A stretch of 64,000 bases of DNA from Botryllus schlosseri (GCA_051294905.1 CM119380.1:25916001-25980000); one strand, 5' to 3'. Shown: positions 953 to 45,781, numbered from the stretch's first letter. Program-made: numbers and translations. The notes: generated by a model from the sequence alone, not told the origin.

Positions 953-1012
953 CTGAGACCATTTTATCGTTTGTGGAGAATCGCAATATCGTTACCTTCG
1001 CTAGCGACATAC

Positions 1013-18817: not shown

Positions 18818-19033
18818 TTAAAATGAATCACAACTGTAAGCTTGATCCCCCACATGAGCGCCGTGTTCTTGTAGAAAATCTATGTAAGCTTGGACTCTTG
18901 TGTAAAAACTCGGTTCCGTCGTTTGACAGCTCTCGCCGGTGAATGGATTTTGGAGATGGAAGCTTGCAATTCCCGCTGCATACCATTCGCAGCTGCTGCA
19001 TCGTTGGCAAACGAGAGTTCCGCCGCTATCCCC
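18818..19033 (-). CDS. Gene A last exon (catalytic Ser)
   Basis: tttag|GGG GAT AGC GGC GGA. GDSGGTLVCQRCSSCEWYAAGIASFHLQNPFTGESCQTTEPSFYTRVQAYIDFLQEHGAHVGDQAYSCDSF*. Confidence 0.92.
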   Translation of the reverse strand, partial: GDSGGTLVCQRCSSCEWYAAGIASFHLQNPFTGESCQTTEPSFYTRVQAYIDFLQEHGAHVGDQAYSCDSF

Positions 19034-22000
19034 CTAAACAATAAGTTTACCCATATTCATGCAAAGCGTTAACCCAAGTTTAGTATATCCGAGCGCAAAA
19101 ATACACAGCTTTATTAGACTAAGCTAAAGATTACTATAAACTCCGAATAAGACGCGCAACACGTGACTACACGGTTGGACAACCAAATTCGACTAGCTGG
19201 AAATCGGCATTGTTGCGAACCATCGGAGTGTCTCAATAGTTCATTGTTATGGTCTTTGTGTTGCGAGGGTTCAATTTCTCGAAAAAACGCAAGTTTTCGA
19301 CATTTTACTGGCTATTTTGGGATAGTTGCAGTACTACGCCTACCATATTTTCAGCATCCGGAAGGAGGACATATCTAGCCGACAATATAACGAAAGTAGA
19401 ATTGTTAAGTTTGAGTCTAATCATGTTTACATTTCGTAGTTGCAGGCATAAGTTACAAAAATCAAAGCAAAATTTAATAAACAGACACAAAATCAAACTG
19501 GCACCACATAAATTGCGACAGATCTTCGCGCGTAAAAAGGCCCAGATGGTGCGGAGAACGTCGAACAATGTTTGCAATAACAACCAAGAGTAGGGGCGAG
19601 CAACCAGCTATTCAGCAAGTCTCAGTAATCGTTTACAAATAAATTCTACGACTCGCCTAAAAGTCTTGTTGAAAGTCAAAGCAACTATAACGCGAATAAA
19701 GAGGACATTTGGACATTTCTTGCGTCCTCGGAGGATTACTCACTTTTCATGAGAAAAGACGACAAATCCTCCTATAAGAGGAAATATGGTAAGCCTATGC
19801 AGTGCCCTGATTAGGTCATAATTTATAATTTCGGAATCGGCGCTACAGTAACTTTCACCCATGACCACTTTCAATAAATGTTTCGATCGGGTCGCAAGCT
19901 ATAAAAAGGGGCTTCTTAGATTTGTGTCGCGGTCTAAAAAGTATGAATTTTATTGGCATCTCGCGAGTCAGGCCCAATACATCGAAATAATATAAGTTAA
20001 TGTCCGTATGCAGCGCTTTTACGGCCATGTATGAAATAGAGAAGGTGCATACAGCCAGTTGTACGCAATGTAGTTCTATGAAACATGTGTGACGCACGCG
20101 ATCACAAATTGGGGTGCATTATTTTCCTTGCGGACCGCATTTGTACGGCGGGTGTTAGATTACGAGAACGGGACTATACGGTGCCGACCATTTCAACGAT
20201 CGGACATATCAATATCGACCAGACAGCGACCGTCATTTTGGGTCAAGGTTTTATCGCCGCCATTTTTTTGACACCGCACTTTGCCGCATGTTGGTAAAAA
20301 CTTCATGTCCGCAAGTATCCTGGCGTAGAAAGGGTCGGCGCCGAAATACCTGGTATACCGCGCAGGTTAGGGATTTCCAGAGAAACCAATGTCAGACGAA
20401 TCTTAGCATAGCATCAAACCGATTTCTTTAATTACAAGATCAGCACATTTTCTTGATCAAGCCGTATTGTCGTAACCACATCTCGCTTATTGAGTACTCA
20501 GAGAGTACCCAACACGCTGACGTCGCACATGTGTAAACTAACCGTAGGAGATCACGCGAAACGCGAAGAATTTTTTTTGTGAAAGAAATTCAACTAATAT
20601 TATATACACACTAAGAGATTGCTCTGATGCCGCCGCGACCCTAAATTATACCCTTCGCGACCCACGTATGGGTCGCAACTCATACTTTAAGAACCCATGC
20701 TACAACATTACAATATCTGTTTACAAAGCTTTAAGGAATTGCCTTCTCTGGTTTGCCAACATTGCCGTATGTTACTTATATAGAAATGAGACACGCCTTC
20801 TCCCTCTCAACGGGCATTGTATTGCTATCGTGCTGCGTGATGTCGTAATAAGTGGCACACCCCTAACCATCTTAGCCACGCTCCTTCATTCCATACCAGC
20901 ATTGGGTACTTACGAAGCATGCACTTTGCGGAGTCAGTGACGAAGTGGCGCAGATTTGAAATTGCTGATCAAATATTAAATAGCGGGAAGCACACCCCGC
21001 GGCGGTTTGTACTGATAGCTGCGCTTCCTGTAGCAACACTGGCGATGCAAAACCTGTTGTAGGATCAGTGTCTAAAGAAAAATGGATCATTAGTGGGCTG
21101 GTGGGGTAAGAACATGTTCGTTTATCGACGGTAGCCTAAACTAGTGAACTGCGGTGATGGAATACTAAATGCAGTGGTTGATACTATTTGTAACGTCTAG
21201 GCCTGTGCAAAAACAAGGTACCTGAGGGATTAGTTTCTATTCAAGTCGAGTATCAACCATTATGACGTCACAACAGTGTCGATGATGTGGAAAGTTCAAT
21301 ATATACCCTTTTGAGACCACAAGGAATATAGCGTCTGTTCTACAGCATATAAATATTAATTTGGTTTTATTTCATTGCAGTTAGTGATAATGCTGTTGGT
21401 TGATTACGACTTCAGAAGATATGCCATTTCAACTAACGTGTGTAGCTTTGTTCTACACGTCTCGTGTGCTACGATACAATCAATCGAAGTTTACGGCCTT
21501 CCACCATAGTGTCCTATATGGTGTCGACACAGGCAAATCTCACGCCTCAGTGAAATTGTATCACGTCACAATTTACATTTGGCTACAGGCAATTTGACGG
21601 TCATTTTTGACCGGCTTGCCGAGCATTAAATTTGGTAAAACAGGTATCAATCGAAAGCTGACTCTGCACTGATTACGAAAATATAAATTTTATTCCGCTC
21701 GTGGCCTTGGAACTCCCACAATCAGTCTCGAATTTTTCATTGTTATGGAGATTTGCATTGGGACGCAACAATGCTGTCTGGCGAAACGAGAGAGTAGCTC
21801 AAGAGAAAATGAGCCAGACAGCATTGTTCAGCATTGTTGCGTCCCAATGCCAATCTCCATAACAATGAAAATTTCGAGGCTGATTGTGGGAGTTCCAAGG
21901 CCACGAGCGGAATAAATTTTATATTTTCGTAATCAGTGCAGAGTCAGCTTTCGATTGATACCTGTTTTACCAAATTTAATGCTCGGCAAGCCGGTCAAAA

Positions 22001-25000
22001 ATGACCGTCAAATTGCCTGTAGCCAAATGGAAATTGTGACGTGATACAATTTCACTGAGGCGTGAGATTTGTCTGTGTCGACACCATATAGGACACTATG
22101 CTTTCACAGTGGATAATATAGTATCGAAACTATAATTTTCGATGATGAATTAACTCTTTGTGGCAAGGATCATATAATTTCACCACTCGAAAAAATCATA
22201 TCTCCCTACTCGACTGGAATACCTAGAATTACACAGAGGTGGTCAAAGTAGTCAAGAAAGCTACTCAAGTAGAAGTAGAAGTAGTGATGAATAAATCTAC
22301 TCAAGTGCGAGTAGAAGTACTTCTTCCATAAGCAACCTAAAACTACTTGAAGTAGAAGTAGAATTGACTGACTTTAAATCTACTCAAGTAAGTAAGTAGT
22401 TGTTAAAACGATCGTAATTCGTTCACATGGATTGTCAAAAGGTGCAAATTGAACTATGCGAAAGGTGCAGAGCTTGATTCATATTGATTCATATCCAATT
22501 TTCGACAGTATAAGCATTCGTCCGCATCATGGGTTGAAATGATCGTATTGATATGGAAATGCGATACTAATCCTCTATTTACTCGAGCAGAACGTTTTAG
22601 AAAATATCATGGTATGGCGCCCTCCCCCATATTGTAAAACCTGTAGTTTAGTCGAAGAGCAATACGGAGAAGTTGTATAGGATACGGTGTAAACACTTTG
22701 CGCGATTAGTAAACTTTAAAAAATATGGTGGATCGAAAAAATGCCGAACTGTGTAGCTTTATTTCCGGAAATTAAAGGGATTACCACACTTGCTTTTATA
22801 CTACAACATGTATATTATCCAGACAAAAGAACTGATGTTAATTAGAACTCAAAGTATATGGTACTGGGAATTGAAAATTAAATAAAAATACTACTTCTGA
22901 AAGCGGAACATGTATTTCATGTCTTCAGTCCAGAAAGTTTCGAAGGTTGGTATGCTAAAACAGCTCTAAAACTAAAAAAAAGTCAGAGTCCACTTTTCCA
23001 GATTAGGACACGCCATGGACTTTTAGATTACGATATGATAAGTAAATGCTAGATTGAGAAACATCAGTTTCAAACGTTATGATGAGCCATAATATTATAT
23101 ACTGTGATGAAATATTTGATATGGCGAGCGGCGACAATGCGGTGTGCACGGAACCATGCCAACCCGCTACCTAAATTATATTCACCAATACTATAGTGAA
23201 ACCAAACCGGTTACCCCGTATCCACTGCGCGCGAAGCGCGACGAAAATTCTGGGCTTTACTTAAATTTTATGAAAATTAAATGTTGATGCTCCGTGAAAA
23301 CAGCCCCAAAATTCTTCAGGCTATCATCCCGATTGGAGGACTAAACTACTTCTACTTGACAAACTGAAAATAGCGAAAATTAAGTAAGTAGATCGCACAA
23401 TATTACGAAGTAGAAGTAGCAAAAATCAGATCTACTTGAGTAAGTACCAGAAGTAGAGGAAAACTACTTGAGTACTTCGAAAAAGTAGAAGTACTTCGTT
23501 ACTGACCACCTCTGGAATTACACTTTTCGATTTAAATTCGAGTACTCGACTCACTGTGCCCACCGCTAGTTACGTTCCCCGTTCATCACTTTTGGAACCT
23601 TTCCCCATACGGTATAAACAGATAGAATGCAAACATAGAAAGACTTAAGTATAAGTCTATGACCACTGGCGCTATAGTGTCGGTCCCCAGCATGGATGGC
23701 ATCCGGCTCCTCAGCTCTGACCTCTTCGGTACCCCGCGGCGGAGGTCCATGGACTTTAAGCTGAGAGCCGCGTGTATTATACACCATCACTATGGCGATT
23801 ATTTAACATGTCAAAAAAAAGTCAAAATTTTGTCGAAATTGTAGCGTTAGGTCAGAAATTGTCAAAATTGTTTACTAAGTCAAAAAAATGTTTGATCCCT
23901 GCATTTTGTTCGTATCGTATATTTTACAGCTTGTAGCCTACTTTATAGGCCTACCGTTGTAGACGGCCCATTGTCTGCTCATTGTGAATCATAAACGGCC
24001 AAATGAAACAAATAGGTTGACGTGGTGTTATGGTGAACGTACCGCAATATCCTAACTGAAGAAAGACTGCTTGGACATTGCATGGTTCTTATATCAAGAA
24101 GCACGTGATGAAAAATTGTGATGTAGGTAGACAACATTGCCAGAATGAAGCAACACGGTGTTTCACCAACAGTGTACGTACAACTTCAGTATTGTCAGCC
24201 AACAACTGCTGCTGTTGAACGTTCTTTCTCCATTTTTGGCAAGCTACTTGATAAGGACAGACCCTTTCTACCAGAGCATGTAAGAAAGTATCTTTCGTTG
24301 TACCACAACAAATTTTAATTATTTCTACCGTAATACGTGGTGTAACTACTGCAATTTTTCATAGGGCCAGATTTCGTTAAAATGTAAGTTTTTGATGAAC
24401 TTTTTTCGGGCCGAACTACTTCGTAAGGTCAGACAGTTCCAACCAGAAATGAAGATAAGTGGTACAATTTTAGCATTGAGGGCGAAAACACCTAATTTTC
24501 ATAAGTAAGGTCAAAATTTGGTCAAAATTAAGTTTTTTTAGGTCAAAAAATGTTAGTATTTTGATCTTATAGGTAAAAAATCGCTCTAACCATCATCAAT
24601 CAAGGTACAGCAATTACCTAATATGCTCAGATTTAATTATAAATGTTTATCTAATATTGCAACCAATACCTCCCCATCCGGTAATAACGCAATTCATCCC
24701 CGGTGCGGGATCCTCCCCCATTGGTAGGCTCAGGGGCGTGGCGTAGGAAGGAACTTCTCTGAAAAGCTGACACGCGCACACGTTTAACAAACGAAATGTT
24801 GATGACTGTGACAAACTAGTACCTTCAACACCATGATATCATGGAAGACATCTGTGTAAAAGGGGAACGGGATCGCTTCGGCTACTGTTATATCCTCGCC
24901 AAGGTTAATATCGATCGATCCCGCCCGTACAAATCCAGCTTCACTACCCGTAATGATGCCGTTCGTTGATCTAGAAATTTCCGCGATAGATTTGCTTTGT

Positions 25001-28000
25001 ATACTAGTAATTTCATATGCCCAAGACAACAATGTACAATACCAAAACGCGACGAGAGGATAGGAGGGTGTCAAAACGACCATGTGCTGTAGATTCATTT
25101 AGCATTCACAGTGACCATAATCTAGTGATACCATATTTCCTCCTTCAGGAAGATTTGTCGTCATTTTTCAAGAAATCTAAAATGTCTTCCGAATACTCCC
25201 ATATGTTATCCATTTTCGCAATTCGTCCTCCTTCATAGATTTGAGAGCCAAGCGATCGCCAGGGGCGATTACAAATACCAGAATAGACGTGAAATCTGGA
25301 TTTCGACGGCAAGGTTGCCTAGAAAAAGGTCAACTGGAATCGATGATACAGTTCGGACGAGTCTTTCAGGATTCGGGGCGGAAAAATTACCCTTCATTTT
25401 TAGTCAACCAGTCAATATTGGCAGTAAAATGGCTCCTGTCAAAGAATGCGATACTTCATCTATTGTGACTTGTGAAAAGTGTCCTCTTTTTCCGATCTCA
25501 GAATATGGTAACCCTGCCATACAGGCATTGAATCCTAGCATTACAGTGACGATGTTCTAGATCTGTGATTCTTAACCAGGAGACGCTGAGCCTTAAGGTC
25601 AAGACACATGCACGTGACTCATACAGTTGAAGTCACGCTGATTTGCCATATTCATTATACGACACGACCTCGGACGCTCAGCAACCTGCTTGAGTCGAGA
25701 GTCAAACCCGCAACCTTTGTGACAATTACCGTTACAACAAAGACGGCCGTTGGAGGCAGATGTACCCAGCACGAGCTATATGGCAAAATGAACAAATCAA
25801 CACAGCCCTTGGCAAATGCTACAAATAGAAAATTGCTCCTAATCAGTTGGATAGCATCGACATGCGCTGTTATACAATATGACCGTCCTCCCTTATCGAC
25901 CGAATAACGGATGTCTTACGTAAACTTGCAGTGCGCTGCAGTCATCACCATCTTCGGTGAGATGATGGCTCCGCCACATGAACCTATTGCGCCGTCCGCT
26001 CTGGGAAAACGATACTGAACCTACAGAAATGTATGTTTCGTCAGTGTCAGTTTAATAATAATTTCATCATTTCCAAACACCACAAGACTGCGATAATAGG
26101 ATGGTGTCGAAACGGCTCGGAGTAGTCTTTGGAATCAGACACGCACCTGGGTCCAAGCGATGTAAATAAGGGACATGCACTCTTGGCGTGTATTTCCACC
26201 CGTGTGCCACCCCTGATATACGAATGTAAATATACAACCGTGGCACGCGAAACCAGTATCTACCTCAGACTTATACCGCGGCATAAATCGAGTACAACAT
26301 TTTAATCCAAATTATACATGCACGTAGGAGCGTATGCACGTAGGCACGTAGAAATGATGACCGCGATATAATTCTGAGTTAGGTTATGTTTTCGCGTACC
26401 ACCCTTATCGGTCCTTTGGGTGTGAAGTGAATACACAATCTTTTTGCTAATAGTGTGGAAAGAACTGAGGGATAACATAAAACGAGTAGTGATGAAATGA
26501 GTGACGGTGAATTGGTTCGTTTCTACGAAAGCTTCGACAGATTTCAATGGGATTTGGACGGAAACAATCAATAACAGAAGAGGGGAATTAGTGTGTATTG
26601 TTGGGTTTGGGGTTGCATTTGAAACAAACGGTTGTTCAAAACACTTTGTTTAAACAGTGTTTTAAACCGGTGGTTTTCAAACTGGGGGGTGCGCCTCCTC
26701 TTGGGGAGCGTGAAAGCGTGAAAGGGGGGCGCGAAGTCGCAGTTACCCGAAAAAATTTTCGCGCGCCACACGTTTTATCTCCAATTCATGGTATTTACTC
26801 TGTCTCTTGTCCGAATTTCTTATTCTGATTTCTCTCTTTAATATTTTGTGATATCACGATAAAGGAGCGCGAAATCTTTCACTATAAAAAATGGGGGGCG
26901 TGTCTAAAAAAGTTTGAAAACCACTGTTTTAAACGTAGGCCTTTAAAAAAAATTGTGTTCTGTTCAAGTTAATAATTGTACAAATACTTTCCAAGAACAT
27001 GTTGTATGAGCCTACGGACGTCACAATTGAATATGCATGACGTCTTAGCTTAGAAAAAACATGTTTTAAACAAGGGCCTAGTTTAAACATGTTTGTTTTA
27101 AATTGTTTTTTGTTTTAAACACAACCCTTGTGGGTTAAACACGTGCGAAATATTGTTGCAAGGTATGTATACCACGCAGATGCTTCTGCGTAAGTGTGAC
27201 ATAAGTTTCAGAATATATTGTATGCTGCTAATTTAATTCTAATCTAATTTTTGAAATGTTTCTACGGTCTGATTTCAATTCTTGTCTAATTTCTCGTATT
27301 CCTGAAAATACAGCAGGAGTACTGTGTAGTGCGCAGCGAACCAAGATTGCTGTACACGTGTACAGACATTGGCCATTCTCATGCTCGTGAGCATGAAGTC
27401 TGGTTTGATGTACTGAACTTGATTCAATAATCAATTATCTGACATAAATACAGTTCGTTTGCATGGTATGAATACAGCTCCCCGTAATGACACATTGTAA
27501 AGTATGTACTGTTTTATTAGTTTCAGTGACGTGTCACCAGAATTGGGAAACTTGATAATTGATAATATTAGATAAACTCTAGATGCCGAATGAGACTAAT
27601 CGGCGTCGGTAATCTAATTCTAGTCTAATACGTGAAATGTGTCTATATGATCTGATTTTAATTCTAATCGATAATATCTGGTTTTCTCGAAAATGTTGCA
27701 GGAGATCTGTACAGTGAAAAACGGTCCAAGCCTTGGTGCACAGGCATTGACCATTTTCGTGCAGATGACAGTGAAATCGGACTGGATATGTAGTGAACTT
27801 TATTTTTTATTTTTTCTTGCATATTTTCCTATTTCTGAATTCAGTTGACTTTTCAAGTTGTTACGAATTCAGTAATGTCACCGTTCCCTAATTTATACTC
27901 TAATCTAGTTTCTGGTTTTCCTAAAAATCCTTTAGGAGATGTGTGCATAGTGCTTATGTGATTGAACTGTGAATTGATATGAAGGGAACTTCATTCATTT

Positions 28001-31000
28001 ATATGTCTTTTGAATTCGAAATTTAATTCGGTTTCACTTTTTTTTCGAATTCGGTAATCCTAATTCTAATTCTAATCTAGTTTTCTAGTTGCCAATTCTG
28101 CTCTTGAGAATTGCATCATCATAACATACATCAAGGTGCATTCTCGCACTGTGCATACCATCCAAGGCCATTGCCCTTCAGAGGCATCACTTCCTCCAAT
28201 AATTCTGACACCGAGTGACCGAGAAGAATCCGACGTAGAGAATGCGTCGTCTGAACTTTGACAGCAACTTTGTCCATCGTAACGTAGTTCCCAGCCTGGT
28301 GGGCATTCCTCTGTAAGATGGGAATTCACGAAAATATTCGAAGTTGGGTTTTTCTGAAGTTACTTACGACTCATGCATTGGTCAAGCGGTGAAACTGCAC
28401 TGCTACAGTAAGAGCATCGGTATTGATCGTTGCATTGTTGCTCTGAGACGCCATTGGCCGTTGGAAAAGGGAAGCAGCGCAGTGTCTCAGTTCCTCCGCA
28501 TGTCTGGGCTGTAGATACGTAGGTAATCGACAATATACTCTACTAGCTTAGGGTTAGCATATTTTCGCTGTACAGAATCAGGAGATTCTTTGCGCCCACT
28601 AGTGGATTTTGAAATGAGGCATGCGAACATTGTTTCCCAGTAAGACGTTGTTACCATATCAATGCCTTGCTTATCTTATGTACACGAATATGCATTTTTG
28701 AGCATAGCGTACCGAATTCACTAGGATATTGAACCATCTCTGGTTTGGGCTCTGTTGATTGCTAGCGGCTAGCGTTGGTGTTATCATTTGGTCTGCAACT
28801 TGACTGGCCGAATGAATAACAGCTCTGCTTTTAATAATATTACCTCGGTACAATTCTGTGGTTGTATGTGGGAATCAGGACATAATTTGTCAGTCACTCC
28901 CTCCACCCCCAGACAAAATATTAAAATAAAATAATAAACACTGGTCTTGGAACCCGACCTCTTCGCGGTCACCAGAAGAAGAAAAAACAGTAAGTAATAA
29001 GTACCACCGGGTTGACACCACTGCATTGACGAAAGCACCCAAATGTGCGTAACTGACACTATAAGGTTATACCGTTACCTCTATAGGCTACCTATAATAA
29101 TGGCCAGTACAATTAGACTTATTTCCGTAAATTATGAGTGTTTTTATTTATTTATTATTGTATTTTTGCGAGGGCTACCGATATTAAAATCAATCTATGT
29201 CCAAATTGTCCAGAGGCACTAAATCGCGCAAGACGCGAAGAAAATTGTCAAGTAGACTAAATATGCCCAAAATATGGTATTGTTTATGTTGGTTTACGAA
29301 AACATTTTGAGCCCCCAATCGGATGGTTTTGGGTGCGCCAGTTGCAACCCTGGGTGTAACGTCTTGCCTACAAACAGTTTGCGCCCCACTTAAACTAAAA
29401 ACTGTTACGATTGCTACCTCTCTTAGAATAAAACGCGAAATGAAGTAACACTTTACTGAAATATACACGACACAACTCAAAAGACCATACGGAATCCATC
29501 ATAGCCAATCCACACTGCATTGCTTCAATTTGCATTTCGCAGCGTACTCAGATGTAGGTCTTTCATATATTCTTTAAGATTGAATCATTGAACTCCTATA
29601 CTTGCATAGAGATGATAGTTCCTACAAAATTAGTATATAATCAGACTATTAGAGTAATCAAAAAGAGTGATTATTGTGATTTAAAAATTCTTAATTACGA
29701 GGTAGCTAATAGATTACTATTTTAACACTCACGTGTGTCCGGCAAGTCTGAAAAAAGATTACACATAGTTATACTCGGGCCACTATAACTTCTAGTGTGC
29801 ATGCTCTTCAAATACTCAAATTGCATATGGAAATATATATAGAATTCGTTATTTCACGTAGTCACCTTCGATTAAAGAATTCAATTGCCAATGTGTGGAC
29901 GTAGATGCAACATTTTAAGTTTCGCTATTTTCCGAGTATGAATATTAATTATTAACTTAGAAGTTAGCTCTCTTAAGAATGGTACGTTTTCTCACCACGA
30001 ACACAATTGTAAGCAGAATTACTGACACACCACGAGCATCCACGGTGCACACATTGGTACGGAGTTAATATCTCTGTCGGCGCGTCCCTGCAGTCGTACT
30101 GGGGTCCCATCCTCTGAGCGCCACATACAGTGCCTTAGGAAAATACAGTGAAGAATGTAGAGAATTGTGACTGACAAGATTTATTACAAACCTTGCATGC
30201 AAGACGGTGACCCCGTAGTGCACCAATGACATCCACTGAGCCAACATTGAACTTGTGTATCCTTCCTCGTAGGGTCTACATAGGAACATTCAGTTCTGGA
30301 ACCAGTCGCCGCACAATTTCCGTCGTATGACATCGGAGCTGAAATGATGGATAATGAAGTTATATATTTTCTTATGCATCAGCACTTGAACAGTATATAG
30401 TTATCTGGTATTTATCCGGAGTCCTGGGCATCGAAATAAAGCTTTAACATACACTGAAGAAAGATGATGACTCACCATGGACTATCTCCTCATCCGTATA
30501 CGGATCTAAATAAACAAATTAAACATAATTTCTTGACCATATATACTTGAAATCACTACCAATGAATCGCACTTTGGAAGCATTTATGTCCCGTGTGATG
30601 TGCACACCAGGAACAACCTGCCTCCCTGCAGATCTTCTTATCTGTTATTGAACCGCCGTTTAGGGTGTTGCACTCTGTATTCGATGACATGTCGACCCAC
30701 GAGCATCCAGCCCCTGAACGTGAATAGGGGGTCAGTATAATATGCGGCATTAACTTATCAGTAATTACTCTTTCCAATATACCTTGGACGCATTTGGTTG
30801 CCAAACTATCACAAAAGTAGCAGCCGTTGTCCCTGCATTCTTGTTCGTTGACGGACACGCTAGCAATCGGACATTCAGATATCTCCTCTATTTCCCGTGA
30901 ACAAGTCAGATCAGATACTCCGACTGCAGAACATAACAACGTTACCTGTTAGTATCTCAGGGTAATTACTCGGTACTCCTGTTAACGTTGATCAAGGGCT

Positions 31001-34000
31001 TGTGTGGTGTATGACGTGTGTGTGTTAGAACTTAGAAGACAATTACTGTTATCAATGATCCGCTTCATGCTTGACTGAGCCAGGATATGGATTACTAACC
31101 TACGTCAGAAGTTTCGCCTTTGTCAAATGTTTTCCCCCTCCTGCTATCAGACTATGCCAAGTTGTCTCAACACTCTAAACTCGCATGTGTACTGCACCCT
31201 ATGATACAGGTGCGGAATTGCGGTAGGCTACGGTATCTATATAATACCGCATTGGACTATACTATAATAGGCCTACTGTTCGAAAAAAATCATGTTACGA
31301 ATAAAAAAAAGCACAGAACCATATCAATTTACTGGTGATAAAAGCGAGTAATGCAGCAACCATTCGACTCATCGTATGAAACTCGTAATAAAATTCATAA
31401 CCATCCCCTGAATTACAGTTCCTATATGTAGTCACAGCGTGACCAAGAGTACTGACAATACATCGACATTACTTCCAATTTATGCATCTCGTGAGTTTGA
31501 AACTATTCGTTGATCCCTGATTAGTTTGCCATACAAGATACTGCAACTGCGTAACTGCATCTGATCGAAAATTGGGACATCCAATATGTAGCAGGATAAC
31601 ATCACACACACAGTGGACCATGTCCGGCACAGCATAAAAGCAAATACTCGCTCGAGCTGGACTGTTTCACAGTGTTGGGATCAAGTCACTACCTTCGAGT
31701 CACGAGTCATTTCGAGTCATTACACATTTTGACTCGAGTCAAGTCAAGTCAATCGATTTTCGAAGGTGACTCGAGTCAAGTCAAGTCACTCGATTTTTGG
31801 AGGTGACTCGAGTCAAGTCGAGTCAAGTCAAGTCAAGTCACGAGTCAAGTCACAATTCAAGTCAAATTGCCTTTTCGAGTTATGAGGCGTGATTACGTCA
31901 TTGTATTTTGCTAGCTGTCTGAAATGCTGATTGAGTGGTCATTGATTTTGAACAGATGACGGAATGTAGAGTTGAATATACACGGAAGCAAGGCGCTGCA
32001 TCGCTCTCATATAAGTAGAACCAATAAACTACGTAAGTAATTGCACAGCCTCAGTTACCAGCCAAAATAGAGAATAGAGAAACGAATTGATAAGATGCAA
32101 TACATTACCCTTTTGCAAACGGAGGCTACACTCGAAGGGGAACCGATCACGCATTCAAAATTAGCAATCAGAATCTTCATAGAATCTGTCCCACTGAAGG
32201 CCTTTCAGCATTCATTGATCACCAACAAGCTAAATTTCTTGCACACATAATTTAGGGTTACCATATTTTCGTTTCACAAATTCCGAACGCTCTTCAGCGC
32301 CCACTGGCGGATTACCAAATCAGGTGTGAGCACATTGTCGACTAATCCTACATCGTTAAGTCATGTTCACGTCACGCTGGTAACATTATTTATCAGCCTA
32401 TTGCCGATGTGCACTGCACCACTGAGTTATATAAACACCGCGTATCCGGTGGTTTCCAACCTTTTATGATCGCGACTTCATTTCCAATTTGAAAATGTGC
32501 CGCAGTCCAGCTCAAAATTTGATGAGCTGATTACTAATTAGAGGTCGGCACATTTGTCCACACTTACTCACGGCCTATTATGGAAGCTAATTACGTTCAA
32601 CATCTCCGCGAACCCCAGAATAAAGGTAAACTACCCCCGGGTTTAAAACCATCATCTTTGAATATAAAGCATCCAAACGGCCTGCCCTAAACCGACTATA
32701 TGAATATATCGTTATTTTGTAATTGCGATTACAATTAGACTTCTTTTGTAGATGAAGGTTATTTATTATTTATTTGTGATCGCAGTTTTTACGAGGGTGG
32801 TAGTCCCCATATTAATACCAGTATATATGACACTAAATCGTGCGCAGCGCGAAGAAATATTTCATGTAGCATAAATCTGCCCAAAAATAATCTTGTTTAT
32901 ATTGATTTACGAAAAAATTATGAGGCCTTCGAAATTTCGGACATTTAGGCATATTTTAGAAATTCCTCCCGGACGCATTTTTTACAGTGAAATTCCGGAC
33001 ATGTCCGGGAAATTCCGGACGTATGGCAACCCTAACATAATCCGAAAACATAATGACAGTGTCGTGAAGTTCAATAACGTTTGAAGATGAAAGAAGTACG
33101 AAAAAAGGAAGACCCTCCGCAACGCTGATGAACAATGTCCTCAATCGGAACGACACCGACATCAGGACATTCTCAAAAGCAGCACTTTCAAGGGAAATTT
33201 AATTTATAACTTAAATCTTTGATGCTCTCTTTTTTGATGAATACTGCCATCACCTCGGTGATGGTGCTCTAAGTCTGAACGCAGACAGAGCTAGACCTAT
33301 ATATATATATAAATTGATATGATACAATTCGAGCCTGCGCCAATGGTTGATAACTATGTAAAGTATTTTCGAATTCAATTGCAATAAAACAATAGATTTT
33401 GTTAAGTTAAGTACACAGAACAGAAATAGACATTTTGCTATTAAATTACTTTACTATACTATAGTTTACGACAACGTAGGTTGTAAGCTTCGATCACTTC
33501 GTTTGCGATCAATATATTTGTGAGAGAACAATGGAGGCTCAGTAAAACGCACGATCATTGAATGATTGGTCGCTCTCGCGGGTTACACCAGCGTTGCGCG
33601 AACAATCCGAACATATGCAAGATACAGTGATTTTCATCGACACTGATTGCTTGATGACTTGAAATTGACTCGTGAATTTTGCTCCGAGTCAGTAGTCAAT
33701 TCGCATTTCTTATAGGCCGAGTCAAGTCAAGTCAAGCCATTTTAGCAAAGTGACTCGAGTCAAGTCAAGTCATGCGAAAAAGTGACTCGAGTCTGACTCG
33801 AGTCAAGTCATGACTAGAGTCATCCCAACACTGCTGTTTCATGATAACAATCGATAACGTAAGATTATACTTACGATGCGGCTACGCATACCTGGATGCT
33901 CTAAAATAGAAACAAGCAAATACGTTAATCATTTCGTATGTACTTTTGTTTGGCGACTTTTAGGGTTTGTTGTGCACTTATTATATGATATATGCCAGCA

Positions 34001-36864
34001 CAGAGATTGAACCAGTGTGATCAGTATCAGTTTATTAACAATTTCATTATTTCAAAACAAACACTACAAGACTGCGATACAATGAAAAGCTAGGACGGTG
34101 TCGAAACGATGGAGTTGTCAATGAAATATGACACCCAGCTAGGACTGGGGGATGTAAAAGGGAGGCATGCACATCGAATGAAAAAAAGGATAATAAAAAA
34201 GTACAAGCGACAAAATGATATGACATGTGACGAAAGGCGAGATCGGTATGTCAGGCCGTGATCCGGTAAACTTAAGGGCGTGCTAGTATTCATTCAGTAG
34301 AGATTGCTTGTATTTCGACTTGAATGTGGACATGCTCGATGACTGTCGGATGACCGGCGGCATATTGTTCCGCACTTCCGTACCGGTAAATTTGATAGAG
34401 CGATGATCTTTCATGTCGACTATGTGATAGGTCAACAAGGTGAACGTGGACGCGCTTGTGTTGTAATTATGCGCTACTGATACCGAGGTAGAGAAGTGAC
34501 CCATAGGAATCGAATGCTAGACGTTACACTTATGCAACTTTGGAACCAAATCTTATATTATGCCGCTCACCCACCAAGTGGTATAAGGAAACGCTATGAT
34601 GAACAAGGGCATCTTTGTTAGTTATCATATGGATGAGGCGATATAGGCATTCAAAATATATTCTCCTTTCAACAATACAGGATAATCAGTAACATCTAGT
34701 CACAAACGTAATTAAATTCATTACCTCTTACGCACTTGAATGGTATGTTATTCGGACACCACGAACAGCTTCGTTGTATACATTGGTACGCGGTTAGAAT
34801 TTCTGTTGGGCTCCTGCGACAATCATACTCGCCATTCACTTTCTGAGTCAAACAGACTTGACCTGCATACGTAATCAACGCGATGACGAAGTGACGTATA
34901 AGCGGCATTTAGTCTCGATATAACATCATTACAGCATCAAGTATAGGCTCTCAGTAACCAGTTATTTACACTCATGGATGGAGTAATTCAACATGCAATC
35001 CCGGAGACAACTATGTATATTATTTTGTTTGTATCATCAGTAAATTGAATAATTTATATTCATATTCAAATTAACCGGACTATTTTCGGCTGACACTCGT
35101 CCGGGGTAATCGTTAGCAAAGAGCGGGGTATTGAAAAGAGCATTAGAAATCAACAGATGTCATACTCGTACCGTTAAAATCATTTATTGAAGTTCTGTAC
35201 CTCCGAGAGTATCTTCAAATATCAGTAAATGTTGAATCCTGGACTAAGTGTCACAATAGGTTTGAAGGTTTGGTGGTACTCTGAAGTATCTTGAAAATTC
35301 GAACTACCTTGAATACATGATGGGTATCCCGTTAGGGGGCACCAGTGACAGCCACTGGCGGCGCAATGAATCCTTTCTTCTGATCTTTCCTGTACCAAGT
35401 ATTCGCATTCAATTCGCATGGTAGCATCGTTGATACAGTTTTCTGTGTTGGCTACAGGTGCTGTAACATCGTAGCATTACATCGCACAATGATCAATGAC
35501 GCCATTTTCCTCGCTAAGCTGGCTATGCATGCAGGATACCCCATTATTTCAACAAATTAATTTCAAATGTGCTAACGCAAACAGTGTTACATGGTTGAAC
35601 ACAGTGACTCGTTACTAAGTAACTAAATTTCCTGTGGCGGAAAGTAAAAGTTACAAGCCTAAGTTCAAGGTTTGTCCCGAATTAACTGGAGATATTGATG
35701 AAAGCTATTCATAGAAAGAAACATCGACTCTCTATGACTGTCTGTTATATTTATGTTGGATATTCTGTGATCAATATGAGAGCCTTGGTTGGGAATTACC
35801 AGTATAGATGAGGATAAGGCGTCGTATTTCGGTAGATATGTGATGGCAGTATGCATATGTGAAATAATGATACTTCGATTTGCGATATCGCTTTGCTATC
35901 TTTGCTTTGTACTTACGCATTATCATATCATCCCTTGATGTCGGATCTATGAAAAATACGTGCAAGAATTTAGCTTTCGGTTACGCTACGGTATTTTATA
36001 GTAGTCTTATATATCTCTACTTTTAAAACACTTGAACCCCGTCTGTAGCTGACACCACGAACAACCCGCATCGTAGCATTTTCGTTTCCTGAAAATCCTT
36101 CCTCCGTTTTCAGCTCTACATTCATTGGCCGAATCCGACATGTTTTTCCACGAGCATCCAACACCTTAAATGGAACATGCGTCGCTTTGTACATCGCCAG
36201 TTCACTGGTTTAGTATGGCATAATGCAGGGTTGGAATGGCTCTCGATTCATGACTCGATTCGAGTCGTAATTTTTCGTTGACTTGACTCGACTTTACTCG
36301 AGTGAATTTCTTAAAATACAAAATGACTCAACTCGACTTGAGTCACTCTGTCTATTGGCTCGACTTGTACTCGAGTAATTGCACATGATTCTATACAAAG
36401 TCATATCAAGACATTCCTTAGGACTGGATTCGTGTCTCTGTATCAAGATCGATACTTGAAAATATGCGCAGAACCTATCCTTTATTTGTTTGTTTGTGAG
36501 AAAAAGAGTATACTATGACAGCAAAAACTATGACTTGGACTTGAAATCGGGTCTCAACACTACGACTTGGACTGGAGCCGTTTCTCTCTGACTTTGACTC
36601 AAACTTTACTTGACTCGAGTCCAGGTAGGACTGACTTGAGGCTTGGATACAACCCTGGTGTAACCCATATCATGCAGGGGACCAGTTTATACGATATCTC
36701 ACAACACATACCTTGTATGCATGATGGGGTGATCCCGTTGCAATAGTAGCAACCATCGCTGTTACATTGCTGTTCCGTCCTGTCGAGTGATACGGTAGTT
36801 GGGCATTCATCGATTTCGTCTGACAGTCGATTGCATTGAAGAGACGACGCCGCGCTTTGTCCTA
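18818..36864 (-). CDS. Gene A: modular S1A (chymotrypsin-family) serine protease, nine six-Cys trefoil-like modules plus a trypsin-like domain; about 720 aa without the unlocated signal exon
   Basis: join(36712-36864, 36021-36164, 35308-35460, 34725-34862, 30783-30923, 30573-30713, 30192-30338, 29996-30133, 28368-28508, 28159-28310, 25920-26020, 24823-24970, 24670-24766, 20914-21071, 18818-19033). All introns are GT-AG and all phases are compatible (2168 nt + 1 nt from the upstream exon). Splicing of the repeat exons to the protease exons is inferred, not observed. Confidence 0.8.
20914..21071 (-). CDS. Gene A protease exon (LQEA...C...ICA...QSACF)
   Basis: 158 bp, phase 1-0. DTDPTTGFASPVLLQEAQLSVQTAAGCASRYLIFDQQFQICATSSLTPQSACF|gtaagt. 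Paralog at 43717-43874. Confidence 0.92.
21505..22100. mobile_element. Fold-back MITE, P/Galileo-like
   Basis: About 270-bp near-perfect inverted arms around a short loop; termini CATAG...CTATG; 7-bp TSD cttccac/ctttcac. Confidence 0.7.
22234..23514. mobile_element. Non-autonomous hAT element with AGTAGA subrepeats
   Basis: TIR CAGAGGTGGTCA/TGACCACCTCTG; perfect 8-bp TSD GAATTACA. A shorter relative lies at 38838-39088. Confidence 0.85.
23791..24588. mobile_element. Internally deleted hAT transposon
   Basis: TIR tatggcgatt/aatcgctcta; TSD accatcac/accatcat. Inverted relative of 11007-12122; contains a transposase remnant. Confidence 0.75.
24127..24318 (+). pseudogene. hAT transposase C-terminal dimerisation-domain remnant
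   Basis: VDNIARMKQHGVSPTVYVQLQYCQPTTAAVERSFSIFGKLLDKDRPFLPEHVRKYLSLYHNKF*. PTTAAVERSFS matches the hAT P-[TS]-S-A-x-x-E-R-x-F-S motif. Confidence 0.8.
24670..24766 (-). CDS. Gene A protease exon (..PLSLP...NCVITGWG)
   Basis: 97 bp, phase 0-1. LFREVPSYATPLSLPMGEDPAPGMNCVITGWG. Paralog at 45481-45577. Confidence 0.9.
24823..24970 (-). CDS. Gene A protease exon (catalytic Asp)
   Basis: 148 bp, phase 2-0. ...FVRAGSIDINLGEDITVAEAIPFPFYTDVFHDIMVLK|gtac. Paralog at 45634-45781. Confidence 0.92.
25920..26020 (-). CDS. Gene A protease exon (catalytic His)
   Basis: 101 bp, phase 0-2. VQYRFPRADGAIGSCGGAIISPKMVMTAAHCKF. Confidence 0.93.
26668..26926. mobile_element. hAT/Charlie-like MITE
   Basis: TIR C(G/A)GTGGTTTTCAAAC; perfect 8-bp TSD TTTTAAAC. 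Confidence 0.85.
27200..28090. repeat. Degenerate direct repeats with TTCTAATCTA/GGAGAT cores
   Basis: About four diverged copies. An inverted homolog occurs near 13520-13950. Boundaries are approximate. Confidence 0.5.
28159..28310 (-). CDS. Gene A activation-peptide exon
   Basis: 152 bp, phase 1-0. ECPPGWELRYDGQSCCQSSDDAFSTSDSSRSLGVR|IIGGSDASEGQWPWM. Confidence 0.93.
28368..28508 (-). CDS. Gene A module e (ninth six-Cys repeat)
   Basis: 141 bp, phase 1-1. QTCGGTETLRCFPFPTANGVSEQQCNDQYRCSYCSSAVSPLDQCMS. A 57-bp intron leads to the activation exon. Confidence 0.85.
29996..30133 (-). CDS. Gene A module d'
   Basis: 138 bp, phase 1-1. TVCGAQRMGPQYDCRDAPTEILTPYQCVHRGCSWCVSNSAYNCVRG. Confidence 0.88.
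30192..30338 (-). CDS. Gene A module c'
   Basis: 147 bp, phase 1-1. PMSYDGNCAATGSRTECSYVDPTRKDTQVQCWLSGCHWCTTGSPSCMQG. Confidence 0.88.
30573..30713 (-). CDS. Gene A module b'
   Basis: 141 bp, phase 1-1. AGCSWVDMSSNTECNTLNGGSITDKKICREAGCSWCAHHTGHKCFQ|gtgcg. Confidence 0.85.
30783..30923 (-). CDS. Gene A module a'
   Basis: 141 bp, phase 1-1. GVSDLTCSREIEEISECPIASVSVNEQECRDNGCYFCDSLATKCVQG. Confidence 0.88.
31670..33833. mobile_element. Non-autonomous hAT element with GACTCGAGTCAAGTCA subterminal arrays
   Basis: TIR CAGTGTTGGGA/TCCCAACACTG; perfect 8-bp TSD CTGTTTCA (31662-31669, 33834-33841). A truncated relative lies near 17810-17935. Confidence 0.88.
32253..33034. mobile_element. Nested hAT MITE (TAGGGTT[A/G]CCAT ends); uninterrupted paralog of the host of the giant palindrome
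   Basis: TIR TAGGGTTACCATA/TATGGCAACCCTA; TSD acataatt/acataatc. Inverted homolog at 48695-49366. Confidence 0.85.
34283..34504 (-). mobile_element. 3' fragment of a LINE ORF2 (CR1/L2-like)
   Basis: HNYNTSAS...SIKFTGTEVRNNMPPVIRQSSSMSTFKSKYKQSLLNEY* resembles the H-x-Y-N-T-R...G..(W)N.LP..IR...S...FK..LK..LL..Y C-terminus of CR1/L2 ORF2. Confidence 0.7.
34725..34862 (-). CDS. Gene A module d
   Basis: 138 bp, phase 1-1. QVCLTQKVNGEYDCRRSPTEILTAYQCIQRSCSWCPNNIPFKCVRG. Confidence 0.88.
35308..35460 (-). CDS. Gene A module c
   Basis: 153 bp, phase 1-1. PVANTENCINDATMRIECEYLVQERSEERIHCAASGCHWCPLTGYPSCIQG. Confidence 0.87.
36021..36164 (-). CDS. Gene A module b
   Basis: 144 bp, phase 1-1. VGCSWKNMSDSANECRAENGGRIFRKRKCYDAGCSWCQLQTGFKCFK|gtag. 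Confidence 0.88.
36226..36657. mobile_element. MITE with CAGGGTTG ends and GACTCGAGT subrepeats
   Basis: cagggttg...caaccctg; no clear TSD. Confidence 0.55.
36712..36864 (-). CDS. Gene A module a
   Basis: 153 bp, phase 1-1. GQSAASSLQCNRLSDEIDECPTTVSLDRTEQQCNSDGCYYCNGITPSCIQG. Confidence 0.88.
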
Positions 36865-39522
36865 CTGTCGATGAATGTAAAATGGCTTTGGCTAAAATGA
36901 TTCGCCATCATTCCTTGTTTGCCACTCGTGATTACCGTCGGTAAGACGCCATCAGTGGTAAAAAAAATTCAAGACGCGAACATATATCACTACTATTTTT
37001 CCCAGAATGGTAGGCAAGTGCCGGTAACGAGGTTTAAAATTATTAAGGATACTCCTAAATGTTGAACGAAACGATGAAACTGTCCACTTACAACATTTCC
37101 CCACTCTGTTCACAAGAAGAGCCAATCCCAGGTAGCGAGCGAAGAGAAAAATATAGTTTACGGAATGCATAACGATATTATCTCACCGCCAAGTGGCACT
37201 GAATATCATAACAGACATTAGACGAATTAAATACAGCCTTCAGGAGCCTTCGTAAATATCTATTTAAGGGAATGGACAAATCAACCATGACATGCATACA
37301 TGTCATGATCAATGTTCCCTCTTATTTTTCACGAGTCTGCGCGCCCTCACCAACGCAGCTTTGAGGGAACAGTGGTCATGATGATGAACTATACGAAATT
37401 TGCTATACTGAGGAACCGTTAGATCATTCATTGGTCGCCTGCAGTTGACATGACGTTCACCGGATTTCTCTCAAAGTATCAGCATATCCATTACGAATCT
37501 CTTCTACACTGGGAGTAATTTATTATCGGAAACCACAATGCGTTGAAAACCAGTCGAATTCGTAATTACCACAAGACGGGAAATCGGATTGTTTTTCAAG
37601 GGAAACTATATAGGATAGAAATTTCGTAGTCGGTGCACCATTTCCTTATCTCACCAACGACAGCACCACTCATTTGTCGGGGCTATGAGAAATCAGGGAT
37701 ATACATAACGATAGTTCCATAGAGACGAGTTCTATATATCCCTGTAAGGAACATCTGGCAGTCGAGAACCTTTCTCTAGCACAGTGGTTCCCAACGTGGG
37801 CGATATCGAAAAACATGGAGGCGATGGGGGACGGTGAGGGCGAAAATTAGATCGTCCAGTGAGATATGTTTAATTAACGCAGTCATAAAATGCACGTGAA
37901 GACAGATTATTCTGCATATGACGCGAAAGTTGATTAAGCAAAAGGTCGACCCAACGGAAAGTAGTCCCGGAAACCGGTTTTCCCAGAAAAATCTCGTAAA
38001 AATGACTTTTTTAAATATCATAATTCACTAGCGATCAGAGTCAGGTGAATCAATCTTCCGTTTACATTTTCTTTTCTTTCGGAACCGTAAATATGTGGGA
38101 AAACCTTTGTTTCGGGCTAAATAAGGAGGCGATGAGTCGATAAAAAGTTGGAAACCACGGCTCTATAGAACAAACTTCATGTAGGGGGTGAAAATTCGGT
38201 GAAGTATTTTGGGGGTTGGGTAAGTAAAGCATGTGAGGGTATTGGAATCATTTCCATATAGATAAAGGTCACATTATTAGCATCCCTCGCACCCGATTAG
38301 TGATCTCGGCACTGCTGCGTGCTATGGTAAGTTGTCATTCGTGTAAATGATATTTCAGTCCAAGTAAAACGCATTTCTCACGTATCTATTATGCCAGTAT
38401 TCCTATTCAGTCGGAGAAGGTATCAGTTTCCAATACAGAATTGAGTTTTTTTTCGATAGGGTTAAACACATGGACGGGAAGTCAGAGCGTTATATAAACC
38501 ATAGTACATGTTTACTTTCCGTGGGTCTAATGTGAGCAATCGAAGAACTTGATATGCACAAAACATTCCGAATGAATTTATACCTCTTTCTGAAGCCTAT
38601 TACTACTTACCACACACTACAAGTATCACTATATGAGAGAAAGGCATTAAAGTTGCATGTCTAATCTCTAAGCATATCTTCAGACAGCAATTCACGTTGC
38701 GATTTCGATGAGTGAAAGGGTTGCGGAGAGATGGTTCAGTTACTCGTGCATTTTTTTACCTTATCTAAACTACAAAACATTATATGCGCAACATATAAAT
38801 CCTGTCGATTGGTGTATATTGCATTGACGCGCGCAGTCAGAGGTGCTCAAAGTAGCCATCGTCGGTACTTAAGCATAGGATGAAGTAATTTCTACTCTCA
38901 AGTAGAAGTAGAAGTAGCGATTACAGGTAATTTAAAAAGCAAGTATTGTAGGCCGCCTATTTTTGCCTGAAAAACTGAAAACTGTCCAGCAGAAGAAGTA
39001 GTCTAAGATTAAAGCGACTTGGGGAAGTCGGCATTATCTACTTGAAGTATTTAGGAAAGTAGGAGCACCTCGTTACTGACCATATCTGGACACAGGTACA
39101 CCCCTGGTTATGACTCGGGCATAGTATTTACCAATTAGAATATAAATTAAAATACGCTTACATCTTCACTATTGGCAATACCTACATACAATAAATAACG
39201 CAGCTCACTCAGAAACCTATCTGATACTTCGCTTTCGACGACTCGCCTTATTAAGCCTTAAATAAGGGGGCATAGCGGGAGCGATATCATGCCGATATTG
39301 TCACAGCAGCTGTTATGTGACGCACATCCTAGGTGATCGCTCATAGTGTACAAAGTGAGCTATGGGGGACAAGTGTAGATCGGGCACGATGTAACCCTGA
39401 GGCTCCCAAACCCAAGATCCGATAAAGATTTCCTGAAATCAGATTACTATTTTGCCAGAGAGTCATATCTATCGCACTAATAAATAACAGAATGACTGAC
39501 AGTAATTCGAAACGCACTCATG

Positions 39523-44400: not shown

Positions 44401-45781
44401 CGTTTGGACCACAGTCCCGTATTGGCAACGTGACACAATCTATCAGTGATTTAACAATTAACATTTATACATTTTTTAATTAGAAGTTGAAGGGTTCATA
44501 GTATTTGGTTTATGCACATTGAGCCAGATACAGCCTGGGTCTCGCTATAGGCCGCTACATCAGGCCGATTAGGGTTACCATGGTAACCTTTAGGAGGATT
44601 AGTCCTCCTTTTTCGGGTTTTTGAAAAAGTGTCCTCCTTTGCCGATTTCAAAATATGGTAACCCTACGCTACATGATGTCACAAAATGCATGAGCACTGA
44701 GTAGCGACAACAAGAAAATGCCTAGTCAATGAGCTAAATCCAAAAATTAGGACTCTGTCACAGATTCCGAAATATGCTGACTACTGCCTCAACCTTATTT
44801 TTGCGTTGAGCAGCTACTTCCTAATCGCTGGATATCATCAACTTCCTAATCGCTATTGATCAATCCACAGATTGGCCGTATATCCAGATTTAATCACTGC
44901 AGTTTTTAGCCTCGAGTCTAAGATTGTGATTAACCTTTCATGAACCCCTTGGAAGGTAGGCCTAGTCTGCGGACCGCCGAAGTATTCACGGACCCAAATT
45001 TAAGAATTCTGCTTTACACGCTTGTTTTGTCGCTTCACACAAACTCCTTTAAATTTTTGTTGACGATTTTGTCAAAAACATCTACTGTGGAGCCATTTTT
45101 CTTCGGCGCCCCCATACCGCTACCCTGAGCCCATATTTGTATCTACGTTAACGTGAATTTTCTGACTTGAGTCAAGTTAAAAGCCGTAAACCAAAGAGAC
45201 TGCTTGCAATTTAAGGCAAAACACGGGTATGTTTTTTCAACAACGCAACCTCGTTTCAATCGTATCATCCATCGGATTAATATGTGAAAATATTTATCGA
45301 AAGAGAAGCTTTTCTTCTGTAAGTGTGCCGTGATGGAGCGGTATATCATGTCTCCAGTGTGCCACAAGATGACATAGTTTGTGAAGTACTGATATATATT
45401 CTCACCAAACAAGGGACAATAAGGGTCGCTATATAAGCTATCGGATTCATTTAGATGAATGGCATAATATTGCAGCCTACCTCCCCAACCAGCAAGAAAG
45501 CAATTCATTCCGGGCACAGGTTCCTCCCCCATCGGGAGGCTCAGGGGCGTGGCGTGGCTCGGGACTTCGCTGAAAAGCTAACACGCGCATAAGTTTGACA
45601 AACAAAAAGGGGGTGAGCGTGACGCAGTAGTACCTTCAGAACCATGATATCGTGCAAGGTATTTGAATAATATGGGAACGGGATAGCTTCGGCGACCTTA
45701 ATCTGCGCGCCAGAGAGAAAAACTGTCGATCCCGCATATATATATCCAGCTTCGAGCCCCGAAAAAGCGGCGTTCGTTAAT
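41464..45781 (-). CDS. Gene B: 3' part of a paralogous S1A serine protease
   Basis: join(45634-45781, 45481-45577, 43717-43874, 41464-41670). The first three exons have the same lengths and phases as in gene A. HDIMVLK, NCFLAGWG, QSACF|GDSGGALVCQRCSSC...YSCDSF*. The His and upstream exons were not found in the window. Confidence 0.88.
43067..43369. mobile_element. hAT/Charlie-like MITE
   Basis: TIR CAGTGGTTCTCAACC; perfect 8-bp TSD GGTTAGTG. Confidence 0.88.
44561..44666. mobile_element. 106-bp mini hAT-type insertion
   Basis: Perfect 8-bp direct repeat CGCTACAT on both sides; contains TAGGGTTACCAT...ATGGTAACCCTA. Confidence 0.65.

Follow-up and report, generated by a model that had tools for sequence, protein, structure and literature searches.

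Mosaic serine proteases of the chymotrypsin family (S1A) are a textbook case of exon shuffling. Domain shuffling onto S1A is common, and the accessory modules of these enzymes (kringle, apple, CUB, LDLa, SRCR, CCP, clip and EGF) define how the protease finds its target. TFF modules are each encoded by one single class 1-1 exon, and the mosaic proteins reviewed as containing them are ZP1/ZPB, sucrase-isomaltase, alpha-glucosidase, maltase-glucoamylase, APEG, beta-gamma-CAT and FIM-A.1/C.1, with no protease in the list (PMC7350206). TFF1-3 are lectins, whose sugar contacts are an Asp or Asn before CysII and a Trp before CysVI; in TFF3, the ligand-binding aspartate is Asp20 (PMC7221086). Here, we analyze a stretch of 64,000 nucleotides (nt) from the ascidian Botryllus schlosseri (GCA_051294905.1 CM119380.1:25916001-25980000; hereafter the window). 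We consider it likely that the minus strand of the window carries one multi-exon gene for a secreted S1A zymogen, in which nine trefoil-fold modules precede the enzyme. If this is true, the trefoil-type array adds a new, possibly lectin-type, targeting module to the S1A repertoire, and TFF-like modules, present in mucus peptides, frog mucins, zona pellucida proteins and GH31 glycosidases, extend to a protease.

Structure of the gene and its catalytic domain

We rebuilt the gene independently on the minus strand from splice signals, reading frame and colinearity with homologs. Fifteen exons run from 36864 to 18818 in one open frame, with AG acceptors and GT donors throughout and a single terminal stop. 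Between 18.8 and 36.9 kb, the stop-free segments of this strand include nine cysteine-rich segments and all signature motifs of the chymotrypsin family. Each cysteine-rich module occupies one exon of 138-153 nt, in phase 1-1 in all nine cases and with six cysteines per exon. This gene structure lies far beyond chance. Three tandem paralogs (genes 0, 2 and 3; the gene studied here is gene 1) helped to define individual exon borders. For module 3, three in-phase acceptors are available (35460, 35451 and 35442), and gene 2 retains two of these, 35460 and 35442. The 69-nt intron between modules 5 and 6 is open in frame here and contains a stop in gene 2, and the 57-nt intron between module 9 and the linker exon contains an in-frame stop. 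Acceptor 21053, which scored marginally best against the homologs, was dropped in favor of 21071, as gene 2 has only synonymous changes in the DTDPTTG segment.

The first module exon starts in phase 1 and has no Met. Joining the upstream segment 38647-38611 to 36864 yields a signal-peptide-like N terminus similar to that of P0001, a complementary DNA (cDNA)-derived protein of another ascidian, and the same stretch is 85% conserved upstream of gene 0. It is thus likely that 38647-38611 represents the signal-peptide exon. A rival first exon at 37170-37092 (MHSVNYIFLF.., GTAAGT) is possible; we ranked it lower because 38647-38611 resembles the P0001 N terminus and is conserved near gene 0. The fifteen in-frame exons with canonical splice sites, the nine symmetrical phase-1 six-Cys exons, the zymogen site with a complete triad and the chymotrypsin-family domain had all been put forward in an original prediction, and our rebuild returned them with the same span and the same junction from 29996 to 28508. 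The probable signal exon was not part of that model, for which a length of about 720 amino acids was given; with it, the predicted product reaches ~731-734 amino acids.

The spliced product contains the His/Asp/Ser triad in order (TAAHC, HDIMVLK and GDSGG) and a putative activation site at R477|I478 (SLGVR|IIGG). Asp194, the Asp of GDSGG, is present. Two exons individually exceed the gathering score of Pfam Trypsin (PF00089, 20.6 bits), namely 25922-26020 (24.5 bits) and 18821-19033 (25.4 bits), and the homologs P0002 from Styela and P0001 reach 192 and 69 bits, respectively, with the same hidden Markov model (HMM). The only PDB matches of the last exon are to chymotrypsins C and A (E 1.4e-4). 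At the sequence level, membership in the S1A family is confirmed. The linker ahead of the activation site gives a sub-threshold cEGF match (16.3 bits, cut-off 26.6). After the signal peptide, the product has 68 cysteines: 54 in the modules, 3 in the linker, 8 in the canonical pairs 42-58, 136-201, 168-182 and 191-220, and 3 extra ones in the catalytic domain. These three come from QRCSSC and the C-terminal YSCDSF, and Cys122 is absent. The family-specific extra cysteines are conserved in P0001 and P0002.

Six-cysteine modules and their probable fusion to a protease

The modules follow the pattern C-x6-10-C-x12-14-C-x4-C-x2-C-x7-8-C with a conserved G-C-x-[WYF]-C, to be compared with C-x9-10-C-x9-C-x4-C-C-x9-10-C in canonical trefoils. 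An adjacent CysIV-CysV pair (CC) was not found, the modules carrying C-x-x-C instead; C-x-W-C is also present in Pfam-accepted trefoils of invertebrate GH31 proteins. We compared the 37 modules of the family with Pfam and found that Trefoil (PF00088, gathering score 21 bits) is the best match in 17 of them (E<=1, best 3.2e-4), with no other family reaching more than 4. An exhaustive search of 1.84 billion representatives with a profile of the modules retrieved seven proteins, including three family members (P0001, the Styela protein P0002 and the fragment P0007), two GH31 trefoil proteins and two noise matches. In the two invertebrate GH31 glucosidases, the matching N termini are true Pfam Trefoil domains with G-C-x-W-C (E 3e-6 and 2.5e-4). 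A profile of 37 sequences run against PDB sequences gave nine weak matches, all of them trefoil domains of GAA, TFF1 and TFF3 (E 0.07-1.5).

We next compared AlphaFold models of module 4 (predicted local distance difference test, pLDDT, 91) and module 9 (pLDDT 69) to 48,161 PDB representatives. At Z>=2, both models matched nothing but trefoil domains, those of GAA, MGAM and TFF3 (Z 4.0/3.6/2.5 for module 4 and 3.3/2.8/2.0 for module 9), with 37-41 residues aligned at a root-mean-square deviation (rmsd) of 2.0-2.9 A. In a Foldseek search, all 17 PDB rows were trefoils, and most AlphaFold-DB rows were P-type domains. As in the TFF proteins, each of the nine modules corresponds to one single class 1-1 exon. 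From sequence and model comparisons together, it is probable that the modules are divergent trefoil-fold domains and homologs of TFF domains.

The term trefoil-like, used for these repeats in the original prediction, is thus borne out by the Pfam best matches, the profile searches, the PDB sequences, the fold models and the class 1-1 exons. The same prediction did not recognize the architecture as a described one. In agreement with this, a trefoil-protease fusion is missing from the TFF review cited above, and a full-text literature search on trefoil domains in serine proteases of ascidians, including Ciona and Styela, with InterPro trefoil-plus-trypsin architectures outside its scope, returned nothing relevant. 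The exhaustive module-profile search retrieved no protein named TRAMP (the ascidian modular protease of Polyandrocarpa). The combination of a trefoil array with an S1A domain is thus apparently undescribed; the few ascidian examples are automatic predictions under misleading names. As judged from Styela clava predictions with four to five modules and from the cDNA contig of another ascidian, it is not unique to this gene, and to this extent the original prediction needs to be qualified. What is new here is the accessory module of a mosaic S1A protease, expanded to nine modules in three tandem copies. The C-x-x-C variant lies just under the Pfam threshold, which would explain why RefSeq misnames the homologs ('TMPRSS3-like', 'factor VII-like') and why one is split in a newer annotation. 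A dedicated module profile would mend such misannotation.

Alternative explanations and the paralog cluster

Several observations weigh against our interpretation. Every module stays under the Pfam Trefoil gathering score, with 19.2 bits as the best value in this gene. The Z-scores of the fold searches, from 4.0 to 2.0, are low; such values are usual for a chain of 45 residues and do not decide the matter alone. The signal-peptide exon is a prediction only. No protein of this gene was found in the searched collections, including with the open A'-B' stretch as query; word-indexed protein searches with the modules of P0001, those of the Styela clava homolog P0011 or the A'-B' stretch returned their own clusters only, or nothing. 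Position 216 of the catalytic domain is a His followed by a 5-residue insertion, so substrate specificity is uncertain. No module has a Trp before CysVI, where Ser, Lys, Asn or Gln is found instead. Finally, we checked the segment 24640-30639 against four runs, three of which are RNA runs of Botryllus schlosseri, each subsampled to 6-13%, and found zero depth on all exons of the segment in these three. The fourth run (X1) continues in line with the genome through the 57-nt intron and thus behaves as DNA. The RNA result neither supports nor refutes the gene model.

In the same runs, intronic repeats at 26040-27640, in the intron between the activation and His exons, attract many RNA-seq reads and show very high contig depth in all four cases; in the three RNA runs, nothing else in the segment had coverage. 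These reads have many mismatches and loose ends, and the repeats are multi-copy transcribed elements outside the gene.

One alternative is that the locus holds two or three separate genes arranged head to tail. The protease would have a gene of its own, modules 1-4 and/or 5-9 would belong to one or two secreted multi-trefoil proteins, and the exons would join in frame simply because all are class 1-1. The most recent annotation of Styela clava (OZ123526.1, 1975538-2000159) indeed splits the homolog into a 209-amino acid 'uncharacterized' module protein and a 298-amino acid 'glandular kallikrein-7-like' protease, 366 nt apart on one strand. In addition, read-through of the donor after module 4 meets a stop after 8 codons, making a short isoform possible, and no RNA of Botryllus schlosseri links the parts. 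Against this, P0001 derives from a 1554-nt intronless contig (public run SRR32906212) in which a single open reading frame (ORF) runs from a signal peptide through four modules into a protease-like domain; the contig is thus a transcript. Both P0001 (37% identity over 525 columns, E 1e-101) and Styela clava P0011 (E 4e-70) align colinearly with the product assembled here. The split Styela protease model starts with a Met inside a six-Cys module exon, the upstream half of which is open in the same frame, and it has no signal peptide; in the earlier RefSeq models (X1 and X2), the protease is joined to five or four modules. From these features, the Styela split is likely an annotation artefact. 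In the Botryllus gene, the activation exon begins in phase 1, 57 nt past module 9, and has no upstream ATG of its own. We searched the 3.8-kb intron between modules 4 and 5 for a signal-exon copy or a remnant of an E module and found neither, and the introns after module 4 (D) and module 8 (D') share homologous stretches. Together, these observations fit an internal duplication of the A-B-C-D block. The order of nine modules and protease is moreover kept in three paralogs. We thus consider separate genes improbable and retain the single gene, for which the presence of nine modules in one transcript rests on comparative rather than RNA evidence.

Another possibility is that, in a tandem array of recent origin, this copy is not expressed or is decaying, and does no work despite its intact look. 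A nine-module profile searched against the 496-Mb genome produced 27 matches, all on one strand and within ~135 kb around the window, which define four tandem paralogs. Genes 0, 1 and 2 have the common order A-B-C-D-A'-B'-C'-D'-E followed by protease exons. The zero RNA depth in three runs would be in line with decay, as would the state of two of the neighbors. In gene 0, the A' module, located upstream of the window, is truncated, the signal-exon copy (2959-2909) has lost its ATG and donor, and no last exon was found; gene 3 is catalytically dead. Gene 1, in contrast, has all 15-16 exons open and every splice site intact, and retains 54 of 54 module cysteines as well as the triad. Its donor and acceptor positions coincide with those of gene 2, 46 kb away, and over all 15 exons the ratio of nonsynonymous to synonymous substitution rates (dN/dS) between the two genes is 0.29 at a dS of 0.54. 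The RNA runs, from unspecified tissues, were read to 6-13% only. A decaying duplicate is an explanation to which we give little credence, and a maintained gene is favored.

Slightly less probable still is that the modules represent a six-Cys knot of independent origin (PSI-like, for instance), similar to the trefoil fold without being homologous to it: for it speak the scores below the Pfam threshold, the non-adjacent CysIV and CysV, a 9-sequence profile without any match among PDB sequences and the chance that AlphaFold is drawn to a known fold, and against it the lead of Trefoil over every other family among the 37 modules, the retrieval of Pfam Trefoil GH31 N termini with C-x-W-C, the trefoil-only outcome of the PDB sequence (9/9), Foldseek (17/17) and Z>=2 fold matches with two models, and the single class 1-1 exon per module. 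A PSI domain had been our first guess from G-C-x-W-C; only 2 of the 37 modules gave weak PSI_Plexin-B matches (E 0.01), and no PSI chain appeared in either module fold search against the 48,161 PDB representatives. Divergent trefoil domains thus remain the preferred assignment.

Coordinates of all exons and of the paralogs are collected in Table 1. In the catalytic domains, the triad motifs are kept in genes 0 and 2 and lost in gene 3, where R|IIGG is missing and PGSP replaces GDSGG. This dead state matches that of the cDNA-derived P0001 of another ascidian, and the dead form seems, from sequence, to be a conserved subfamily. In a tree of the 37 family modules, the modules group by type and not by gene. 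The His exon and the modules of gene 2 lie past the window end (equivalent window coordinates 69.7-83.4 kb), and the window from 45.8 to 64 kb is thus part of its ~24-kb intron. In our reading, the cluster cleanly illustrates how a block was duplicated within a gene, how the gene was then copied in tandem and how one lineage lost catalysis.

Table 1. Exons of the studied gene and parts of its tandem paralogs (window positions, except for gene 3)
Feature	Position	Strand	Remarks
Candidate first coding exon (likely 16th exon of the gene)	38611..38647	-	ATG and hydrophobic stretch MPFSHIVILVVC; phase 1 end at GTAAGT donor; predicted
Module 1, type A	36712..36864	-	class 1-1, six Cys; HMM E 4e-14; splice sites kept in gene 2
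Module 2, type B	36021..36164	-	class 1-1, six Cys; HMM E 5e-20
Module 3, type C	35308..35460	-	class 1-1; HMM E 8e-18; Pfam Trefoil 19.2 bits, best of this gene
Module 4, type D	34725..34862	-	class 1-1; AlphaFold model pLDDT 91, trefoil fold
Module 5, type A'	30783..30923	-	class 1-1; preceded by 3.8-kb intron
Module 6, type B'	30573..30713	-	class 1-1; 69-nt intron from module 5
Module 7, type C'	30192..30338	-	class 1-1
Module 8, type D'	29996..30133	-	class 1-1; donor 29996 joins 28508
Module 9, type E, most divergent	28368..28508	-	class 1-1; HMM E 2e-8; model pLDDT 69, trefoil-only matches
Linker exon	28159..28310	-	3-Cys EGF-like hairpin ECPPGW..SCC; Ser/Asp-rich spacer; SLGVR|IIGG at 28206-28201; start of catalytic domain
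Catalytic exon, C42..TAAHC	25920..26020	-	His57 equivalent 25933-25931; Pfam Trypsin 24.5 bits
Catalytic exon, HDIMVLK	24823..24970	-	Asp102 equivalent 24840-24838; acceptor set by colinearity with P0001 and P0002
Catalytic exon ending ..CVITGWG	24670..24766	-	position 122 is Ser, no Cys122
Catalytic exon DTDPTTG..LLQEA..C168..C182..SAC	20914..21071	-	S1-pocket position 189 is Ser (20925-20923)
Last exon	18818..19033	-	GDSGG; Ser195 equivalent 19027-19025; QRCSSCEW; C-terminal YSCDSF; stop; Pfam Trypsin 25.4 bits
Gene 0, 5' modules	813-1674	-	type A 1151-1014; type B 950-813; partial extra A-like piece 1674-1567; remainder upstream of window
Gene 2, last four exons	41467-45777	-	Asp exon 45777-45634; GWG exon 45577-45482; 43854-43717; GDSGG exon 41670-41467
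Gene 3	about 26012158-26029278, outside window		four modules A-B-D-E; catalytically dead

Two further elements were noted in introns of the gene. The intron before exon 14 contains a short palindromic element at 21690-21915, with a near-identical ORF of ~53 amino acids (MALELPQS.S.FSLLWR..) on both strands. On the plus strand, an ORF at 24145-24318 ends in ..AAVERSFSIFGKLL..R..L; it resembles the C-terminal dimerisation motif of hAT transposases, and we take it to be, probably, a transposon remnant.

Proposed mechanism and comparison with known systems

We propose that the gene product would comprise, in order, a short signal peptide, nine modules of ~46 residues (A-B-C-D-A'-B'-C'-D'-E), a three-Cys EGF-like hairpin, the SLGVR|IIGG site and the catalytic domain, with an array that may have originated by internal duplication of a four-module block. 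Following S1A chemistry, a trypsin-like protease would cut after Arg477, and the freed N terminus at Ile478 would pair with Asp194 and order the active site. The chymotrypsin C-like pocket with Ser189 suggests that the enzyme itself is probably not Arg-cleaving; it would then not activate itself and would need a separate trypsin-like activator. The linker and the catalytic domain each hold an odd set of cysteines (three linker and three extra catalytic ones), and Cys122 is absent; if all cysteines pair, at least one disulfide would connect the linker to the catalytic domain, and the array would stay attached after activation. The trefoil array would thus be held on the active enzyme by a disulfide, as is the heavy chain in plasma kallikrein and factor XI.

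With less certainty, the array may act as a multivalent binding arm, possibly as a lectin, and so keep the protease attached to a matrix rich in glycans, for example mucus, tunic or egg coat. In the module alignment, a Glu or Asp directly precedes CysII in eight of nine modules, and an aromatic residue between CysIV and CysV is invariant; glycan binding by the array appears plausible. A more far-reaching scenario, which we put forward tentatively and regard as rather doubtful in its entirety, is that of an ascidian-restricted family of glycan-guided proteases, the first with TFF/trefoil-type lectin modules fused to a serine protease. Its members would dock multivalently on mucus, tunic or egg-coat glycans and be activated by a trypsin-like protease, and dead paralogs (gene 3, P0001) could compete for the same ligands. 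The array would have doubled from ~5 to 9 modules before the gene was copied in tandem.

We compared the predicted protein to described systems. Its nearest relatives in Styela clava, XP_039257699.1 ('coagulation factor VII-like X1', 530 amino acids) and XP_039257700.1 ('transmembrane protease serine 3-like X2', 483 amino acids), are automatic predictions with misleading names, for which we found no published study. They are colinear with our product and share the signal peptide, six-Cys C-x-x-C modules, an ECPxG..SCC linker and an S1A domain with the family-specific CQRCxxCxWY and C-terminal YSCD. They differ in having 4 or 5 modules rather than 9, at ~30% identity, and in combining Asp189 (trypsin-like S1) with K|IVGG, whereas Ser189 and R|IIGG are found here. 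Because of Asp189, the Styela homolog could activate itself. A type II transmembrane serine protease was rejected, as Pfam finds no SEA, LDLa or SRCR domain in P0001, P0002 or the window exons; by inspection, P0001, P0011 and the candidate exon each begin with a short hydrophobic peptide that resembles a signal and leads straight into module 1, where that class has a cytoplasmic tail and a signal-anchor. A vitamin-K-type coagulation factor, as the name 'factor VII-like' implies, was likewise rejected, with no Gla or EGF domain beyond the sub-threshold cEGF match on the linker. Around the Styela homolog, the nearest large ESM Atlas clusters consist of proteases of the CLIP, CUB, LDLa or kringle type, and Trefoil is absent from all of them; we treat this as a lead only.

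Among trefoil proteins, the best structural matches are the N-terminal trefoils of GH31 enzymes (GAA, MGAM and sucrase-isomaltase; Z 4.0 and 3.6, rmsd 2.2-2.3 A over 37-40 residues). Invertebrate GH31 forms (P0003, P0006 and P0012) share G-C-x-W-C and are still accepted by Pfam Trefoil. Unlike the modules described here, GH31 trefoils precede a glycosidase and keep the P-W-C-F motif, which is lost in our gene. With the TFF modules, our modules have in common six cysteines in ~45 residues, the trefoil fold, one class 1-1 exon each and the arrangement in tandem arrays (PMC7350206, PMC7221086), and the acidic residue before CysII may be compared with Asp20 of TFF3. They deviate by C-x-x-C in place of CC, by the missing Trp before CysVI and by scores under the Pfam threshold, and they are fused to a protease, whereas TFF modules accompany mucin repeats or stand alone.

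On the enzyme side, chymotrypsins C and A share Ser189 in the S1 pocket; our protein differs from both by His216 with the 5-residue insertion, by an extra C-x-x-C after Cys201 and by a long modular pro-region. The closest solved structure to the catalytic domain of the Styela homolog is plasma kallikrein (E 5e-42). Plasma prekallikrein and factor XI, in which four apple domains precede an S1A domain, resemble our prediction in the N-terminal array of small disulfide-rich binding modules, in one Arg-Ile activation cleavage and in a heavy chain expected to stay disulfide-linked. The array is built from apple/PAN domains in these proteins and from a probable trefoil fold in ours, which in addition has Ser189, no Cys122 and a putative tether formed by family-specific cysteines.

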